DNA from: Lepidodermella squamata
Lineage: Eukaryota > Animalia > Gastrotricha
Assembly (NCBI GenBank): GCA_047495785.1
Contig: JBLDXI010000009.1
Span: 310,001-374,000, forward strand
DNA length: 64,000 nucleotides
Direction: 5' to 3'
Shown here: in pieces, positions 53,564 to 64,000 of the stretch
Numbering within the stretch: the first letter of the stretch is position 1
How the letters are laid out: each line of letters opens with the position of its first letter
Position numbers and translations under genes: made by a program
The notes under the pieces: model-generated
Seen by the model: the letters and a program-made list of their open reading frames with translations, nothing else
What the model was told of the DNA's origin: nothing
The model's database searches: none

Positions 53564-54205
53564 GCCGTAAGGTATTCCGGGATAGCCCCAATGTATAGTA
53601 TACATCGTGTATAGCGCGCACTTGTATACTATACAACCGTATACTATACAGCGTGTATACTATACATGTATACTATACAAGCTGCGGATGCGCGCGCGCA
53701 CTTGTATACCATACAAGTACGTCAAAATTACGGCCGTTTTCAAACCTAAAATGCAGATCAAGTTGGTAGAAGCATGACCCCCTGCTTAACATTCGAATTT
53801 AGATAAATCGGTAGTTGCTCTAGGCTCTATGAACAAGCGTTTAGCATTCAGCTTCGGGAAAATTAGGTATGAATTTTACAGCCAAATTGAATTGTGGCCA
53901 GACTGTGGAATGAGGGACATGTCTAGAAGAGTAATAATTTGATTGGCTCGAAAATAGTTGATTACAGGATCTTTAAAAAGCTGTTTCTTGTGTAGAGTGC
54001 GCGTAGATTGCATAGAAGCGCGCTCAAGAAGTTGCAACTTGTATAGTATACATGTATGGTATACAAGCACCTAGTGCGCACTCCATGGTTGAATAGTATA
54101 CATGTATAGTATACACGCTGTATAGTATACGGTTGTATAGTATACAAGTGCGCGCTATACACGATGTATACTATACATTGGGGCTATCCCGGAATACCTT
54201 ACGGC
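53564..54205. mobile_element. 642-bp MITE with perfect 113-bp terminal inverted repeats and 8-bp target-site duplication
   Basis: 53564-53676 is the exact reverse complement of 54093-54205. Flanked by ATGAAAAC at 53556-53563 and 54206-54213. TIRs are built of TATACTATACA sub-repeats. Confidence 0.93.
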
Positions 54206-54396
54206 ATGAAAACCCTGATGCAGCAAGCTCATTAAATAACCCCGCCACTTTTCATTCGATCATTCTTCAGAATCAACTTTTTATGAAAACCACTTAATTA
54301 TTTATCAAGTACAAAATAATAAAATTTGATGAGAAGATAGAATAATTTTAAAATACATAATTTCTGTTTTAATCGAGGGTAAGAGAGAAAACTGCA

Positions 54397-54415
54397 GTGG
54401 CTGTCGCACAGCCAC
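54397..54415 (-). other. candidate Helitron 3' terminal stem-loop
   Basis: GTGGCTGT-CGC-ACAGCCAC is an 8-bp perfect stem with a 3-nt loop, followed on the minus strand by TGCAGTTTT. Confidence 0.6.
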
Positions 54416-54562
54416 AATCCGGGAGGGTTGGAAGTTGGTTGGGGCCGTGGCGATCGGAGGTAAAGTTAGGGAAGGTTAATAACTGAATAACTGTTAGCAT
54501 TCGTGGATTGAGATGCTTCTATTAGTTCTTGTGGTGTACCAAAAATATCTACAAGAAAATAC

Positions 54563-54594
54563 GATGGATGGGTGGATGGATGGATGGATGGATG
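54563..54594. repeat. (GATG)n tetranucleotide microsatellite
   Basis: gatggatgggtggatggatggatggatggatg. Confidence 0.9.
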
Positions 54595-55246
54595 TTAGAC
54601 CCTGACACCAATTCTGGTGATTTAACAGGGCTTGGGTTTATAAGTTAAAACCTGTCACCGATGACCGAATCCGATTCGATGACCAGGGCTTTCGAGCTAG
54701 TCAGCTTACGAATGAAGGGGTCGGTCTGACTCTATCAATAATTGAAAATAAGGTTACAGCTGCTGCTTTATCTTGCTCTTAGCTTGTTAATTTTATGTTT
54801 GTGTCTCTTGCGTGCTTCGCAACATCATTTATTTCAGCGCCAGAACTTTAGTTTTGATTTATGATTACTTGAGACGTGCGTCCTTATTAGCTTCTATTGC
54901 GTCATACAATTGGGATGACTACCCACTAATACATATATTTTTATCTAGCCTATCATCAATCAATCAGGATTGTTACGGAAAATTGCCCACAAAGATATGC
55001 TGTTGTTCGCCATTCAAGCTCCAACTAAGTGTTGCTAAAGTTGGCAAAAAAATTAGCTTCTACTGGCTTCCGGAAATAATAAAAGTTGGGTTGAATTGAC
55101 ACTCAGACGCGTTTTATTGTTAAAGTTTGTTGAATGAGCAGTAAAGAAAAAGTTGTACTTCAATTGAAAAGTTTCACAATAAAACTGATGTAATGAAATG
55201 AAATGAGATGATGAAAAAAGAATGATCAAAATGAGTAAAAACAGTG

Positions 55247-56349
55247 TTATTTTCGCATTGGTACAAGTTGGCGGCGAAGGACCATGGCCTCTTCGAAGTC
55301 GGGATTGACTTGCAGGTTCCTTGTGCAGGAAACCTGAAGGCCGAAACGCTCCGAGCGTTGAATCGTAGCATGCTTGAACGCTACTATTTTCGGCTTGGTT
55401 GCTCGTTTGAGGGCAGGAATTTGGTCCTCCCATACGCACATCTTCACGCTGACGAGAGGAGAAAGCTTCAGCGTGAAATCCATTTTTGTCAACGGACGAT
55501 TCTGAAAAATTGAAAAATAAAAAAAAACCAGGAGTAATAAAAATACATACGATGCCGCTTTTTGTAGGCGTTACAGGCGCTGGCGCTTCTTCTTGGCTGA
55601 CGAAACCAAGCAGGTCAGTGAAGCGCCTGGTTTCGTTGAGCTGAATAGCCGCAAAATCCGTCGGCGAAATAACGTTCCACGTCAGCTGAGGAACGAGGAT
55701 ATCGTCGACGGGCACTGCTGTGAACGAAGATTCAGCTCTGAAACTTGTTGCCCCGAAAACTGGGTCGGTGTCCTGTTGGGAAATAGATTAAATTAAATGA
55801 CCGGTAAAGAATTGATGAATGAATGGCAAATTATATAATGTCAAGAAATTTCTCACCTTTTCGGCCTTGAAGCCGAAAATTTTGAAAGTTCTGTTGAAGA
55901 GCAGCTTGCCGGCTATCAGCTCAGCTTGCGTGGTGCATTTGAGCTTCCGGTTGTCCTTGCCGTCGTAAATGACGAAGGTGACCATTGCGCCGTTGGAGTA
56001 GTGACTAGGAACAAATAACTAGGTATAAAAAACTCAAGCGTAGAAATTCAAATTACGCAATGCCGCTGGAGCTAGCGACTCGAATTATCACTGCGGCGTC
56101 ATGGACTGGCGTTGTCAATGTCCAGAGCGAGAGCGGCTTAACTGGCGTTGTCGACATGACGTCAGTTAGATCGAAGTCATAGTCGACCGAATCCTCGTTT
56201 ATCAAATCTGGAAAAATACGAGTCACCAGAATTAACTAATTGCAGTAAAAATTACTGGGTGAATCGATCCTTGCCCTCGATTCAGGGCGTTCGCCCTCCG
56301 ACATCTCATTAAGATTGAGCCCGTGTTTTATTCCGCGACCACGAGACAT
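55247..56349 (-). CDS. RPA70-like ssDNA-binding protein containing only OB-folds DBD-A and DBD-B, 5 exons, ~290 aa
   Basis: Phase-consistent GT-AG splicing gives 'AAVIIRVASSSGIAHYSNGAMVTFVIYDG...VPQLTWNVI...FTDLLGFV...VSVKMCVWED...IVAFKHATI...LQVNPDFEEAMVLRRQL'. This parallels RPA1 'WTICARV...LPTVQFDF...VDIIGIC...VTATLWGE...VLAIKGARV...IIANPDIPEAYKLRGWF'. Confidence 0.8.
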
Positions 56350-56790
56350 GTCAGATTGAAATGAGATTAAAAAACGATAAGAATAATAACAAGGAATAAT
56401 AATAGGATAATAATGAAGAACAATAGTACACGAAAATGTTGAGAAAGCTGTGAATGATGTTGATGACCACAGAAGGGAGGTTTAAGTAGCCAAAAAGGCG
56501 GTAAAATGGTGGCAGATTTACTTTTTAAAGCACGCGACGTTTTGGCGCGTAGTATTGCGCAACAATTGAATTACAAATGGGCGTGAAGCAGCCTGACAGA
56601 GTAATCGGAAATTCATAGGAGAGCACGTTGGAAATGTCAAACAACTAGCTACTCCTTAGAATATCGGATTTCATTAGTCAGTGAAATGTTGATCGAAAAT
56701 TGCTAAAATTGTTTACAACCACCTTTACGTCCAAGTTCCAATGGAGAAGTTTTATTGCTAATCAACTAAAGACGTAATAATGGCTCATAA

Positions 56791-59700
56791 TTACGAAGGC
56801 TGTGAAGGAAAGGCGAAGTCGTAGCGTGACTTGGTGTTACGATGAAGCACACTTAAACGTTCCATTTCCTTGCATAGTGCCGGGCACGGCTTGCATAGAC
56901 TCATGAGAGACTCTGGGAGGTCGATGATGCCGATGCTGCTCAGGCCCCGCTTTCCGCGTGAAATTTGGACGTAAAAATGCCTTGGGGACGTTTCGGCAAT
57001 AATATACCGATCAAATTGGCAACCTGAAGACACGAGATTTTGACTTTGCTAAATAAAATTATCACAACATTAAACCTTGCGTGCAGTGAGTGGTCATTAC
57101 ATCTGCTTGCCTCAGCTGAACGGCCGTAATGGTGATGGATACGGTTTTCCGTTGGTTGTGCTTGCTGTTCGCGATTTTAACGCGATTTCGCAATTTATGT
57201 TGCATTGGAGGCAACGCAATAACGTTATCGGGAAGGCCTGGGGGTTGGTTCGGCGGCTTATACCTCAACTTCCCCGACGCGAGTTCCACTAAGACATATT
57301 CAATGGTTGCGCGCTTCTTAGTTGACGGATCGATCGGAATACGGAATCGCATTCCTTCAAATTCTCGCTGAAATTTAGGAAAAATAATTAAACATTTCGG
57401 GATGTATGAAATATTACAAGAACGTATTGCGTATTTTCGGGAAACTTCCAACCAACAATTCGTCCCCTTGTGCCGTTCGCCAAACCTAAATAATTCAAGG
57501 ATGATTCATCTAAAGAACAATTTGAACAGGACTAAAATTGTTATCATGCTGAAATTTAAAAAATCCTTTTAGAATTTCATATCAAATTTATGGTTTATCG
57601 GATATACGTAATCACAATCCCTAAAACTGAAATAATCGAATGAATTTTCAAGGACAATCATGCTTTCTTATAAAAATTGACAAATAATTTGGTTTCGCTT
57701 AAAGTATGTCTTAAGTTTTAAAGTCTTAAGTAACGGATATCGGATAAAAATACCCATCGGAACGTTAAGGCTCGTTGAAATTAGCACATTGGCACCCAAG
57801 TACAACGGCAGGAATGTTTGAATTCTCTCCAATTTCTCATCGCCCAGTGTTTTCAAGAAATCAATTTCATGTTTGGAGAGCGGTTCTGCCTTATCGGAAG
57901 AGATTTTGAAATCAGCTTCGAGCATAATTGGTTCTTTCTCGCCTTTTTCGGCCAACTCAAGACAAACTGAACGAAGATGTTGTTTCGCCAATCGATGCCG
58001 TGTTTCATTTTGGGTGACTATTTTCGGACAAAACCCGTCTCCATCGGGGATTTTTCCAATTCGGTCGCGTAGAAGGTTCCAAATTTCGTCATCCCACAAG
58101 CCCTGGCGTATTTTCTCCTGTAAGGCTGCGTAATCAGGAGCGTCAGTACGGAGATTTTTCGTGAGCAACACAGTGTTTTGAGTGATCGTTCGATAGCATC
58201 GGAAACCCTCAGATTGGCCTTTTTCAGAATATAATAGGGACCCATTGACAGGGGGTAGTTGGAAGAAGTCGCCAGCAAGAACAACATTGGCACAGCCGAA
58301 AAAATTGCCTTTCCTCTTGTCGTCAAACACTTCTTGTATCCACTTTTCAAGAGCTTCGAGCTGATTTTGAGCTGTATTAATATGACATGAAAAAAATTAA
58401 AACTAGCGCACTTTTAAATAATCTACTTAATTAAAATTTAACATAGAGTCGATTCCATCATTTATTTGTCCGTCTAAAAATCCTTCCTAAGAATATTGAG
58501 CTACTAAAATAGTAATTACCCAACATTGAGAGTTCGTCAATGATGATCAATTTGAGGCCGCCGAAGCGTTGTCTGATGTTATCAGAAATGCTTTTGCAAT
58601 CGCTCTGGACGAATCCGCAAATTGCCGAGGCTAGAGTACAGCCGTTAACATTGATCGCAGCTACTCCCGAGACTGCCATTGTTGCAATGGAGCCCGGTCG
58701 TTGCCAGCTAGCAGCAAGAGCCAGCCATCCGCGGATTACCTATATGGTGTAAATAAATTGCTACAGCGTTAATAAATCGAGGTTATACTTACGGTGGATT
58801 TCCCAGCGCCTCCTAGGCCATGTAGCAGCAACACCTGCTGATGGTCAAGCAAAGTCTCAATTGACATATCGTCAACCTCGTCATCCAGAAGGCGTTGCAA
58901 AAAAGCTCTTCCTTGTACGATGAATGCCCTGTGCTGATCCTCGGTGTAGTTGAAAGCCTTCGAAATCTCATTTAAAGACGCAAAAATTGGAATTCGAATT
59001 TCAGGCTGGCCAGGGCTTCCCGGGACATTGACAAAAGCGTCTATTTGGTTTCGGGTCTGAGATTTACGTGCGTCACAGTAGGTGCTACTGCTTGATTGAT
59101 ACAAGCAATCATCACGCGCCAATTTGCCCAGAACAAGCACTTCAGTGACTGATAATGGCCGGTATTTACCTTCAGGCTTCGGCAATACATCGTTCAAAGC
59201 AACGGGAGACTCGCCATTTTCGATTTCGGTAGGCTTTTGCTTGATTCCGCTCTCCAAATCTTTCTGGCTAACGTGGCTCAGATGGCTCGGCAAATTTAGA
59301 TCAGCGAGAAATGACGTGTTATTTGAACCATCGACTTCAACTTCATCCGCGAGCCAGTTGTCTTCGTCGGCGTCCGAATAGATTTCAGAATCGACATTTT
59401 CCATACTTTCAAAGGAATAGTCGAATTCAGCTTGATTTTCTTCGTTTTCTCCCACGATTTCTGAAGCATTCAGGTCGCTCCGATTTGGCATGTTCTGAAA
59501 GTTCAGAAAATTTGAAGTTTAATATTAATTTACACATGATTAATTTTGATTATTACCTTCTCCATTTCTTTGAGGTGTTCATAATAAGCCTCGGTCATTT
59601 GCTGGCCTTTAAGCAGCATGTCCCAGCGATCTTGATTATACTTAATATATTTCAGGCCGTTATCCGACACGTCTCCGGACGTTAAGGCGTCTCTCCACGC

Positions 59701-62700
59701 TTCAGTCCAAGTGTTTTTAGAGCGTTTCAAATCGCCGATGCTTCGGGGTAACGGCACGAACATCAGTAAACAGGATAATGCGAAATCTTCCATCTGTTTA
59801 TCGTTTTCTATTCTTTGGGTAGGCAACAAGCCTGGGCCAACGACTACTACGACAGCTGGTTGCTCGCGTTGACGATATGCCATTTTTCTGAATTGAGCGT
59901 GCTCAGGTTGGAATCTGTAGCAATCGTCATTTTTCCCCAGGGCACATTTCTCGAAATGCATGGTGATATCATACCAGCACAAATTTTCAAATTCTTCAGG
60001 TCGCAATATGATATCGGAAATCGCATGGTACCCCTTGAAAGAACCGTCATTTTGTCGCTCGAGATTAACATTAACGTCTCGATTGTTCAAAAGAGCCAAG
60101 GCTGAGTTCAGGTACAGTCGACTGGAAACGTGGGACTCGTAAAACGCGATATCGTTCCTCAACAAATACAGTGCTGCCATTGGAGTGCAGATCTCTTGCC
60201 GGTGGGTCAAGTTGTACAGGAGACTGCGCAATCGCCCAGCGCCTCGTTGAGCTTCAGGGATGGTTTCAGTTTCTCTGTCTATTCGGCGCTTGATTGATTT
60301 CTCCAATCCTTCGGAGTACGCTTGGATAGCAGCTTTTGAATCGACATCTTCCTGAGGTTTCGTCACATACTTCACAGAATAGGTAATCGAACAGCCTCGC
60401 AAATGTCGTATGTCGTGATTCGATCTAATCAGCGAGAAAAGTTCAGACGAGAATCCATTCAGCCATTCACACCCTAGGGTTCGCCTTAACTTGACCTCTT
60501 CATCGATACGAACTCCAGCGGTATTATTGGACCCGATTGTAGTTTCAGCGGTACGATCTGCGGGCTTTCCAAAACGGCAGTAACAGTGCTTCATTCCTCG
60601 TTTTGGCCCTATGGTACATAAAAATTTAATTCAATTTCGTCATTGTAAAATATTTACTAATACCTTTTTTGAAACAACTGCTATAATGCATGTATGCATG
60701 TTCCTGGACAGCAGCAATGCCTTCGGTCAAGAAAATTGAATCGAAAATGAGTTTTCTTTCCTCCTCTGAAATTAAGCCGACCAAGCTTTCACCTGACAGG
60801 TGTCTGATGATCTTTTCATTGCATGCAATTACAGTCGCGTCGTCGATAGTGGCGGGGAGCGGAAAAGGCTGCGGAGTTGCCAGTCTCAAGCGAACTGAAG
60901 GTTTTAAATTCGTGAGGTCAAGACCAAAAGTTTCGGTCAGAGCGGTGAAACACTTTTCACGCAAAGAGCAAGCCGTAAAATTCGTGCTACAGCCAGGACA
61001 CGAAGCTATCGAGTAGGGGCAACGATTTGCATTCTTCATCTTTAAAAATAGCTCCAGCTTGCGCATAGACAAATTAGCTTTTCCGCAACAAGGACATATA
61101 AAATTCGGATGACCCTCTGCGTCGGTACCGTTGTGAAAAAATTTGAAAATCGGATACTCAGCTGAAGTTGCCGAATCAGCGAAATCCTTCAGAGCTGTTT
61201 CAAAATGTGGATCTTCGGCCTCTTCGAGGGATGTACGAGGCCCATCCAACCATAACAACGCATGCCAGTGTAGCGTTCCCGATCCTTGGCTTTCAATTCC
61301 GGCTGTCCAAGCTCGTACTCGGCCGAAATACCCACCGTCTGGGGTGGAACACTTTTTTTCACGATCCCAGCCGAGAAACGGGCCGAAAATGAATGCGGAC
61401 AGCTTGTCGAAATAAGCAGCAGCCGCAACAGGGTCCAATCCTGCATGTTTCTGGATCCAGTTCAGAGGTGGCAACGATTTCCCAGAATAAAAATCGTCTA
61501 AGGTTATTGCTGAGTCGGCGATTTCTGACTTATCTGGGTCAGACAATGTGAGCAGCCAATTGTTGTGATCGGTAGGTGATACCGTGACCATTAAATGGGG
61601 TTTGCCAAAACGACCGTAGTAGCCATACACACGGTTCCTCATTTCTTCGCGCTCGAACTTATTCCCAAATGTATTGCCGGCGGCCTTCTCAATACACTTG
61701 AGGACACGTGATGCAGAGCGAAGAGACTCGGGGATATCGCTCGGCTTTTGGTTTCGGCTTATTGCAGCTCTGGCCCCAATTTGGTACTGAAGCAGTTCAG
61801 AAAAATTTTCGGGTGAAACGCTTACAGCTTCCGCCGCAATATTCGGATCACATTTTAATCGCACAGACAGCTGCAAGTGCGCTCGTTTCCGAGCTATCAT
61901 ATCAAACGCCAGCAAAACGAAATTCGCATCTATCGCAAATCTTCGATCGGCTATTCGCATCAAATGTTTCACCGCTTTTTCTAACGAGACATGCACCGGC
62001 CGTGGGCATAAAGGCGAGCCAACCCCGTACGGGAACAAATTAGGAAAAGCCTTGATAAAAAATTCGGCGTCACGTTCATTTTGGAAGACGTTCGATGATG
62101 TCACACGAAAACGTTTTAGATTTTCGCCGTCTTTGATTTCATCAACTTTTTCGACATCAGGTTGCCGGCCTTGCGATGTGTTGACATCAAATAAACCAGA
62201 ATGAGTTTCTAACAATCCACCTTCATCTAAACCGCTATTCACGCGAATCGATTCTGCGCTGATGTCACCCATGATTTCTTCGCCATCATTCAAAATCGTA
62301 GTCAAATCCAACCTTTCATCATCTTCAGGTAATGCATTGAGCGCAACATCATCAATGGGAATCATTTTGAACGATTTGTTGTTTTGTTTCAAGAACATCA
62401 TGAAGTCACGCACCAATTCTCGCCGAACACGAACGTATTTTTGTTTGGCAATCTAACCATACAAGTCAAATATGAAATAAATCTCCAAAATTTCACAAAT
62501 TTTACCTTCATGTCATCGTCAGTAGCATTCGCGAAAACAACAAGGTAATCTTTATCTTCCAAAGCCATGGGCATTTGTGTAGCAGCAGGACCGGGAGTAG
62601 CGACAAGAGCAATCGTGTGGCTACGTAATTGTCTGCGTAAATTTCGACCGATTATTTGAATGTTCGCAGCAATTTGAACGAGCGATGTCATCTTTCGTTC

Positions 62701-64000
62701 CGCCCAAGACAATGACGAAAATTGTTCCGGCAATCTCCCAAACGCCCATCCATTTGCTATTGCCATCACAGGCGGCGTTTTTATGCTAGAAGAGCAAAGC
62801 GAGTCGTAACAATGCTTGCAAAACTGCATGGAAGTTCCTTCTGCACTGTTCGAAACGCCTGCAGGATTCAAAGCGAGGCCGGCTAATCGTTCGTCAATAT
62901 CCTTCGCGCAGTATTCCTGACGCACACTGCTAGGAATGGAATCGGCCCAACGCAATCGAGACAATCGGTTGTAGATAAACGACTGCTCCAGGATTTTCGT
63001 AATGATGTCTCGTTTTGGTACTAGTTCCTGACAGACAGCGCACACCGTTTCAGTCAAATTATCCGCCGAGAAGAAGTCCTTGATTTTGTTGACTGCATTT
63101 TCTTTCTTGAAATCAGAGATTGCTTCGAACACTCGCATGCTTGAATCGACATCGGCATCGGGTAAATCCTCCGGCTGAACCGTTTCCTATGAATAATTTT
63201 GTTTTCCCTTAAACGTTTCTCCAATTGTTCAAGCTGATTACCTTGACCTCGTATATATCTTCACTATAACAAGGTGTATCCTCGGCAATAAATAAATTGC
63301 GTGATTGAGACTTAGAGCCTGATTGTGCTTTTGGCGTCGTTGTCCCTGTCACTGTAGATTGTGAAGACTGCGGATGTTTTCCTACATAATAGTGAATAGC
63401 GAATGTGTATGCAGCACCATGGAGTAAATAGCCTACTTATTTCAGCGTCAACATCTTCGGCTTTCACCATTAAAGGTGTTTTCTTTATTTGATTCTCTGT
63501 TAGCAAGCCGCGCTCAATCAATCTCTTTGATTGCAAAGCAGATAAATGCAGCAATTCCATTCTTCCAAAGCACTGCTCTTTAAATTTGGACAGGGTTTCA
63601 AAACCGAACAATTTCATGGCAAAACAGGCGTGAAAATAAGCACCGATGCCTTCGACTTCGATTCGATTTGCATCCAATTGATCAATCTATCCGAATAATG
63701 TTAAATCAAGTTATTTTGCACTAAAGCCTACCATTTTCAATTTTAGAGGTGTCAAGCGCATTTCTGGCATAGCCTCTATTCTAGCAGGCCCAGACGGCGT
63801 TGAATGTCCAGTTGCGGATGATGAAGTCATAGGTCTTTTTACAACAAGGCTACCTCCTTCTACAAAACAACCACAGAATTAGAATAATTGTATCAATTAT
63901 AAAATGCATGCCTACCATTGTTAAAATCAAGCTGTCTTTTGCCACCCAAAACAGCTGGGCTTGCAAGGTCGATTCGCACAGGGAGTTTCGGAGGGGTCGA
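56791..64000 (-). CDS. Helitron Rep/helicase (DUF6570-like + HUH Rep + PIF1 SF1B helicase), multi-exon, 5' truncated by window
   Basis: 'PPVMAIANGWAFGRLP', 'KAFPNLFPYGVG', Rep motif 1 'HLMVTVSP', HUH 'ESQGSGTLHWHALLW', catalytic 'YSVKYVTK'. Helicase motifs 'GLGGAGKS', 'SGVAAINVNGCT', 'IIIDELSM', 'GDFFQLPPV', 'GLANGTRG', 'TTHCTQG', 'YVQISR'. Confidence 0.93.

Follow-up and report, generated by a model that had tools for sequence, protein, structure and literature searches.

A probable transposon-owned gene for an RPA70-derived DBD-A/B protein in a recently active Helitron2-type element of Lepidodermella squamata

In a 64,000-nt stretch of the genome of the gastrotrich Lepidodermella squamata (positions 310001–374000 of contig JBLDXI010000009.1, here C9; the whole stretch is referred to as the window, and coordinates are those of the window unless a contig is given), a small gene resembling part of cellular RPA70 (RPA1) lies next to the gene for a RepHel transposase. 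The locus therefore raises the question of whether the RPA-like gene belongs to the transposon or to the host, and what its product might do for either. We consider it probable that it is an accessory gene owned by the transposon, coding for an RPA70-derived protein of the DBD-A/B type and carried by a recently active element of the HLE2 (Helitron2/Helentron) class. Sequences used for comparison also lie on contigs C54, C21, C13 and C7. The IMP4 gene in the neighbourhood scores far higher against human IMP4 (406 bits) than against that of yeast (277 bits), in keeping with an animal host.

The RPA-like gene occupies positions 56349–55247 of the minus strand and is modelled as five exons, followed by a candidate poly(A) signal; a second AATAAA precedes the gene, and both hexamers were read from the sequence.

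56751..56756, minus strand: AATAAA, 35 nt 3′ of the RepHel stop
56256..56349, minus strand: exon 1 (E1), with the ATG at 56349; basic 31-residue leader with no host RPA1 counterpart
56057..56207, minus strand: exon 2 (E2), 151 nt; acidic stretch, then the putative first strand of OB-A
55857..56004, minus strand: exon 3 (E3), 148 nt, phase 2 to 0; putative OB-A core
55551..55772, minus strand: exon 4 (E4), 74 codons, phase 0/0; putative OB-A end, linker and first strand of OB-B
55247..55501, minus strand: exon 5 (E5), 84 aa and the stop; strands 2–5 and C-terminal helix of an RPA70 DBD-B-like OB fold
55113..55118, minus strand: AATAAA, candidate poly(A) signal of the RPA-like gene, 129 nt 3′ of its stop

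A preliminary description of this DNA had placed a five-exon gene about 440 bp downstream of the RepHel stop on the same strand. Its coordinates proved accurate: the gene starts 441 nt 3′ of that stop (56791–56793), its four introns (48, 52, 84 and 49 nt; phases 1, 2, 0 and 0) are all bounded by GT..AG, and the spliced model is an unbroken 870-nt frame for 289 aa, with the stop included in exon 5. We regard the gene as confirmed, with a splicing pattern predicted from the frame and the GT-AG sites. Its leader joins a basic N-terminus (E1, 56256–56349) to an acidic-hydrophobic stretch at the start of E2 (56150–56207); this leader is without an RPA1 counterpart and may serve in localisation or in binding a partner.

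Because the two genes lie on the same strand only 441 nt apart, exons 2–5 could also belong to the transcript of RepHel as an alternative 3′ portion, within a RepHel-OB fusion or a bicistronic RNA; RepHel is itself split by introns. Yet the AATAAA located 35 nt past the RepHel stop argues for two transcription units, E1 has its own ATG, which is kept even in a decayed copy described below, and the RPAs of published Helentrons are separate open reading frames (ORFs) (PMC4067079). We judge the fused or bicistronic arrangement to be quite improbable and treat the RPA-like gene as a separate unit.

Whether this unit is part of the element was decided by the positions of the element boundaries, which are given here with the features near the 3′ end.

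54391..64000, minus strand, continuing past the window to the equivalent of ~65024 (C9:375024): Helitron2/HLE2-type element of ~10.63 kb, with its 3′ end at 54391/54392
54397..54415, minus strand: 3′ terminal hairpin (8-bp stem, 3-nt loop), then TGCAG(T) and the element end; DNA folding energy –8.6 kcal/mol
54416..54433, minus strand: right arm of an 18-bp perfect inverted repeat, whose left arm (element bases 5–22) lies beyond the window end
54563..54735, no strand assigned: (CCAT)n microsatellite (~54565–54600) and two dispersed-repeat pieces, in the 3′ untranslated part of the element

The 121-Mb genome holds three full copies of the element, one on C9 and two on C54. The C54 copies are identical to each other (100%) and 99.2% identical to the C9 copy from window position 54391 to ~65024, with different sequences on both flanks; contigs assembled from a DNA run switch to other flanks exactly at 54390. 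The RPA-like gene ends 857 nt inside this shared 3′ boundary, the 857 nt contain no ORFs, and the hairpin, which sits 6–7 nt from the element 3′ end, and the (CCAT)n tract both lie downstream of the gene. The gene thus sits inside the 3′ terminus, as the preliminary description had proposed, and RepHel and the RPA-like gene co-occur in three copies with common ends and unlike flanks. All matches to E4 and E5 in the genome fall in this element family and, beyond the full copies, come only from a decayed, 5′-truncated fragment on C21. An older decayed remnant at C9:5.008 Mb has pieces of the helicase C-terminus followed by exons 1–2, in the same order as in the intact element; its E2 is 62% identical at the amino acid level and the ATG of E1 is kept.

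The same data dispose of the possibility that the gene is a host RPA1 paralog adjoining a Helitron insertion. A gene that lies well within a 3′ boundary common to three copies with unlike flanks, and that is found nowhere outside the element family, does not fit a neighbouring host locus, and the host RPA1 itself was located on C13, as a full-length gene of its own in which Rep-A_N, OB, REPA_OB_2 and Rep_fac-A_C domains are recognised. With no point left in its favour, the paralog reading is refuted and we assign it a negligible probability; the gene belongs to the mobile element, as had been proposed.

The transposase gene next to it is split by introns, and its domains were therefore read from ORF pieces.

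56791..63677, minus strand, with 5′ exons continuing beyond the window: RepHel transposase gene, intron-split ORF pieces with DUF6570, Rep HUH, YxxKY, Walker A and PIF1

Among these pieces Pfam recognised DUF6570 (PF20209; 35.2 bits, cut-off 24.3) and Helitron_like_N (E = 2.9e-12), as well as weak PIF1 pieces, a weakness explained by the intron-split structure; HxH, YxxKY and Walker A motifs can be read in the translations. DUF6570 upstream of Rep is the marker of HLE2 elements, whose termini carry short inverted repeats, the right one being followed by a stem-loop (PMC11417382). The combination of DUF6570 with an 18-bp inverted repeat followed by a 3′ hairpin therefore assigns the element to HLE2, in agreement with the Rep and PIF1 architecture described for Helitron2 (Bao and Jurka 2013, PMC3627910; PMC11417382). 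Plain Helitron, the class given in the preliminary description, was thus a misfiling; a canonical Helitron with TC...CTRR ends was ruled out by the termini. No RepHel ORF piece has a Pfam match to Exo_endo_phos, the AP-endonuclease domain, which places the element as Helitron2-like, outside the endonuclease-bearing Helentron subgroup. A word-indexed protein search with the 596-aa Rep ORF returned nothing at E <= 1e-10. The RepHel ORF pieces are free of stops in the C54 copies, and the element, low in copy number and recently active, with an intact RepHel, is apparently still active, as judged from its sequence.

No target duplication is seen at the insertion sites. The flanks read T|T at the C9 copy and at the outer sides of the C54 pair, with G and A on the inner sides; whereas the HLE2 target is T|T, the three copies here can equally well all be read as A|T, and no empty site was found in the genome. 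Either terminus is carried only by the three full copies, apart from a match to the 5′ end on C7, which indicates a family without abundant non-autonomous derivatives. This match (G000:C7:687884-687933) is a lone 50-bp segment, 94% identical to the element 5′ terminus, and may be a solo end or part of a related element. The two C54 copies (G000:C54:3271108-3292406) stand in the same orientation with a unique 299-bp spacer between them, so that the pair shows T...T outside and G and A facing the spacer; it could be one composite insertion, the result of two local hops, or an assembly artefact. The C9 copy is ~134 bp longer than those on C54, mostly through a ~124-bp duplication near the 5′ end (window-equivalent 64600–64850).

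We next turn to the relationship of the gene product to RPA70, for which homology searches and fold predictions were run exon by exon, with single exons as queries. E5 aligns with host RPA1 exon Z, which covers most of DBD-B, at BLASTP E = 3e-4 (30% identity over 77 aa). In a shuffle test its semi-global score of 36 compares with 7.7 ± 3.9 for shuffled sequences (z = 7.2), and none of 1500 shuffles reached it. Residue 24 of E5 is a Trp that lines up with the host Trp and with human W361, and the Phe at residue 53 falls within one position of the host Phe and of human F386. The nearest neighbours of E5 in a protein language model are REPA_OB_2 clusters (0.95). When modelled alone with AlphaFold (pLDDT 57), E5 gives a strand-strand-helix-strand-strand pattern whose top fold matches are OB domains of RPA70, SSB, Teb1 and CST, at non-significant levels (Foldseek E ~0.5, VIA-align Z up to 4.6). 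The similarity to host DBD-B is significant and E5 is a distant RPA70 DBD-B homolog, the identity to host RPA1 in this domain being ~26–30%. Searches of the PDB by sequence with E5 and E4 gave nothing relevant, and a word-indexed protein search with E5 gave no candidate; the same search with host exon Z found only 7 short RPA1 fragments without DBD-A, from which no useful profile could be built.

Several results weigh against an RPA70-derived DBD-A/B protein and have to be set beside this homology. The E5 match to Pfam REPA_OB_2 (13.4 bits, E = 0.075) lies below the 27-bit cut-off, and it is the only match, sub-threshold as it is, that Pfam returned for any of the exons. A phmmer search with E5 against 1.84 billion proteins produced three matches, all to spurious repeat proteins (Sushi, SdrD and similar). 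E2, E3 and E4 show no significant similarity to the host DBD-A exons by BLASTP, shuffle tests or hhalign, and the AlphaFold fragment model of E3 (pLDDT 69), a generic strand-strand-helix-strand arrangement, has no OB match. Finally, no splice junction was seen in RNA: none of the runs recorded as RNA contains the gene, and the sole run presumed to be RNA covers only 54699–55429.

What connects the upstream exons with RPA1 is the architecture of the gene. Three consecutive host exons can be paired with E3–E5.

host exon X, 160 nt, phase 2 to 0: compared with E3, 148 nt, phase 2 to 0
host exon Y, 222 nt, phase 0 to 0: compared with E4, 222 nt, phase 0 to 0
host exon Z, start phase 0: compared with E5, start phase 0

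By Pfam, host exon X is the DBD-A OB fold. Host exon Y ends at position 32 of the REPA_OB_2 profile, and the profile is then matched at positions 35–98 by host exon Z and at positions 35–81 by E5, in both cases from residue 2 of the exon. Since residue 2 of both exons falls on profile position 35, the intron between E4 and E5 is at the RPA1 position, a conclusion that does not depend on a pairwise alignment. The sequence match between E4 and exon Y is not significant. For E3 the predicted strand-strand-helix-strand pattern is accompanied by language-model neighbours in DUF223 and tRNA_anti-codon OB clusters (0.85–0.90), which we take as a lead only. The agreement in lengths, phases and profile position is good evidence that E3–E5 derive from RPA1 exons X–Z; with this descent the protein would be a DBD-A/B pair, and we infer the presence of DBD-A from the shared exon architecture. 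Three of the four introns are apparently at host RPA1 positions, and since introns of the RPA1 kind were kept, the gene most likely entered the element as genomic DNA. The RPA1 of a related organism (metagenome contig L028, 5738/5739; 65–85% amino acid identity) has no intron between X and Y; the shared introns are therefore not all universal, and X|Y was gained or lost within the lineage.

The remaining RPA1 domains appear to be missing. Using the host domains as tblastn queries, we found neither DBD-F nor DBD-C with its zinc part in the element, and the RPA-like frame ends directly behind the DBD-B helix, at a point where the host exon runs on. With DBD-F and the zinc ribbon-bearing DBD-C not found, the gene is to be regarded as an RPA70 derivative and not as an ortholog. 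The earlier claim that it encodes only the two DBD-A/B folds of RPA70 thus stands in part: DBD-B is backed by the exon Z match (E = 3e-4, z = 7.2) and the absence of DBD-F and DBD-C by tblastn, whereas DBD-A has no significant match.

If the gene serves the element, its coding frame should bear traces of selection. Between the C9 and C54 copies, its coding sequence differs by 5 synonymous and 0 non-synonymous changes, all in E5; RepHel has 11 synonymous and 10 non-synonymous codon changes in the same comparison. A deeper comparison is provided by the C21 fragment, which spans E4 and the first 59 codons of E5: here the synonymous divergence (dS) is 0.95 and the non-synonymous divergence (dN) 0.046, a dN/dS of 0.05, with a value of 0.09 for E4 alone. 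Both the low dN/dS and the synonymous-only differences between copies point to long and strong purifying selection on the modelled frame. As a separate observation, non-coding sequence is also retained between C9 and C21 (G000:C21:161130-161710): intron 4 (55502–55550) has 84% identity and the last part of intron 3 (55773–55792) 90%, with dS near saturation, so that conservation is higher in these short introns than at third codon positions.

These figures bear directly on the reading of the gene as a passenger, a piece of RPA1 carried without a role in transposition, as Helitrons often do with host fragments. Such a history would agree with the repeated gene captures by Helitron-like elements (PMC11417382), with the entry as genomic DNA that introns at RPA1 positions indicate, and with the truncation of the gene within an RPA1 exon that runs on into DBD-C. 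What it does not account for is an intact frame with its own ATG in 3/3 copies, the dN/dS of 0.05 at near-saturated dS, the exclusively synonymous differences among copies (5 against 0), and the RepHel-then-RPA order already present in the old decayed copy; moreover, cargo of this type is found repeatedly, in Helentron and Helitron lineages that are independent (PMC4067079, PMC4683698). We therefore find a passenger unlikely and retain the transposon-owned accessory gene.

The natural reading of such a gene is a dedicated single-stranded DNA-binding protein (SSB), and a possible course of events can be put together from what is established for Helitrons and RPA. RepHel would nick the element at its left end, its PIF1-type helicase would peel off the transposon strand, and the mini-RPA would coat the displaced strand, blocking re-annealing, folding and degradation until this strand has been cut at its 3′ hairpin end, circularised and integrated. 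Lacking DBD-C, the protein should not join RPA32/RPA14; the absence of DBD-F should keep it from recruiting the checkpoint proteins that cellular RPA binds through RPA70N. The gene itself would have originated by capture of genomic RPA1 DNA, from which the last three introns would have kept their phases and spacing. More tentatively, and with a probability that we put clearly below even, this HLE2 lineage may have captured animal RPA1 genomic DNA independently, retaining three introns, and may use the trimmed DBD-A/B core as a checkpoint-silent SSB, which would coat the transposon strand without RPA32/14 and without DBD-F, the platform from which cellular RPA signals exposed single-stranded DNA.

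A functional OB protein need not be a plain coating SSB. Through its acidic leader it might contact RepHel or the partners of host RPA, acting as a decoy or adaptor, or it might shield the element from host surveillance; the basic E1 and the acidic-hydrophobic start of E2, neither with an RPA1 counterpart, the missing DBD-F and DBD-C, and the strong divergence from RPA1 (~26–30% identity even in DBD-B) would all be in line with this. On the other hand, both aromatic positions of DBD-B that stack on single-stranded DNA are kept, and binding of such DNA is the simplest use of a DBD-A/B pair. We hold a decoy, adaptor or shield to be improbable and keep to a dedicated SSB.

Comparison with known systems shows which part of this arrangement has precedents. 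The preliminary description had taken RPA cargo to be merely sporadic in animal Helitrons, which is overstated: mite Helentrons have a published RPA ORF of 358 aa, free of introns and limited to DBD-A and DBD-B (Thomas, Vadnagara and Pritham 2014, PMC4067079), RPA homologs are on record for zebrafish and sea anemone Helitrons and Drosophila Helentrons (PMC4683698), and the HELIANO study of 2024 reported RPA domains across HLE1 and HLE2, in HLE2 mostly upstream of RepHel, and argued for repeated captures (PMC11417382). A mini-RPA70 in an animal Helitron-like element is thus an already known kind of cargo. As in the mite and Drosophila Helentrons (PMC4067079), an HLE2-type element with subterminal inverted repeats and a 3′ palindrome carries the RPA-like gene next to RepHel, as its second gene, and like the mite protein the product is RPA70-derived and restricted to DBD-A/B (289 aa here, with a putative DBD-A, compared with 358 aa in the mite). 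The gene departs from the mite ORF, which is intronless and recognised by CDD at E values of 1e-12 to 1e-15, in having four introns and a detectable DBD-B only; the RepHel of our element also shows no AP-endonuclease domain, unlike that of Helentrons, and unlike in most HLE2 elements (PMC11417382) the RPA-like gene lies downstream of RepHel.

A downstream position is shared with the RPA-like proteins of plant Helitrons (PHRPA; PMC4683698), which are likewise RPA70-derived and spliced and are thought to bind the displaced strand; those, however, are cargo of canonical HLE1 elements and group in a plant clade of their own, and no sequence link between them and the present gene was found. With the DBD-A/B core of cellular RPA70 (PDB 1JMC, 1FGU) our gene shares the DBD-B homology, the Trp and Phe stacking residues and the exon and phase match over three exons, whereas it lacks DBD-F and the zinc-containing trimerisation domain DBD-C and is multi-copy and mobile. 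Several features set the present gene apart: it has diverged extremely, it has four introns, three of which apparently agree with RPA1 in phase and spacing, it lies downstream of RepHel within an HLE2 element, and its intact copies are very young.

The locus thus adds a clean animal example of an autonomous, apparently still active element of the Helitron2 type, whose ends are resolved to the base, whose RepHel is intact and whose accessory SSB-like gene is maintained by selection. Should the retained RPA1 intron positions be confirmed across animals, they would be direct evidence for capture at the DNA level over a retro-copy and could help to date the capture. A role for transposon-encoded SSBs has been proposed since 2001, and in the literature searched, which covers part of the field, no experimental demonstration was found; the element offers a workable substrate for asking what such a protein does in rolling-circle transposition.

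Some minor observations concern the 3′ part of the element and its surroundings. A 2015 run presumed to be RNA matches 54699–55429 (3′ untranslated part and part of E5) at 100% identity and extends past the AATAAA at 55118–55113; the contigs of this run have odd strand-switch joints, and the match may represent a 3′-biased transcript with a longer untranslated region. Beside the (CCAT)n tract, the dispersed-repeat pieces at 54563–54664 and 54687–54735 have at least 40 genomic copies of 87–98% identity, and the region 54563..54735 has a ~10-fold excess of depth in a DNA run; the pieces may be a nested or captured element resembling a miniature inverted-repeat transposable element or a short interspersed nuclear element. 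Just outside the element 3′ end, a 158-bp inverted repeat with 91.8% identity between its arms (53564–53719 and 54049–54205, ~330 bp apart) looks like a separate small element with terminal inverted repeats.

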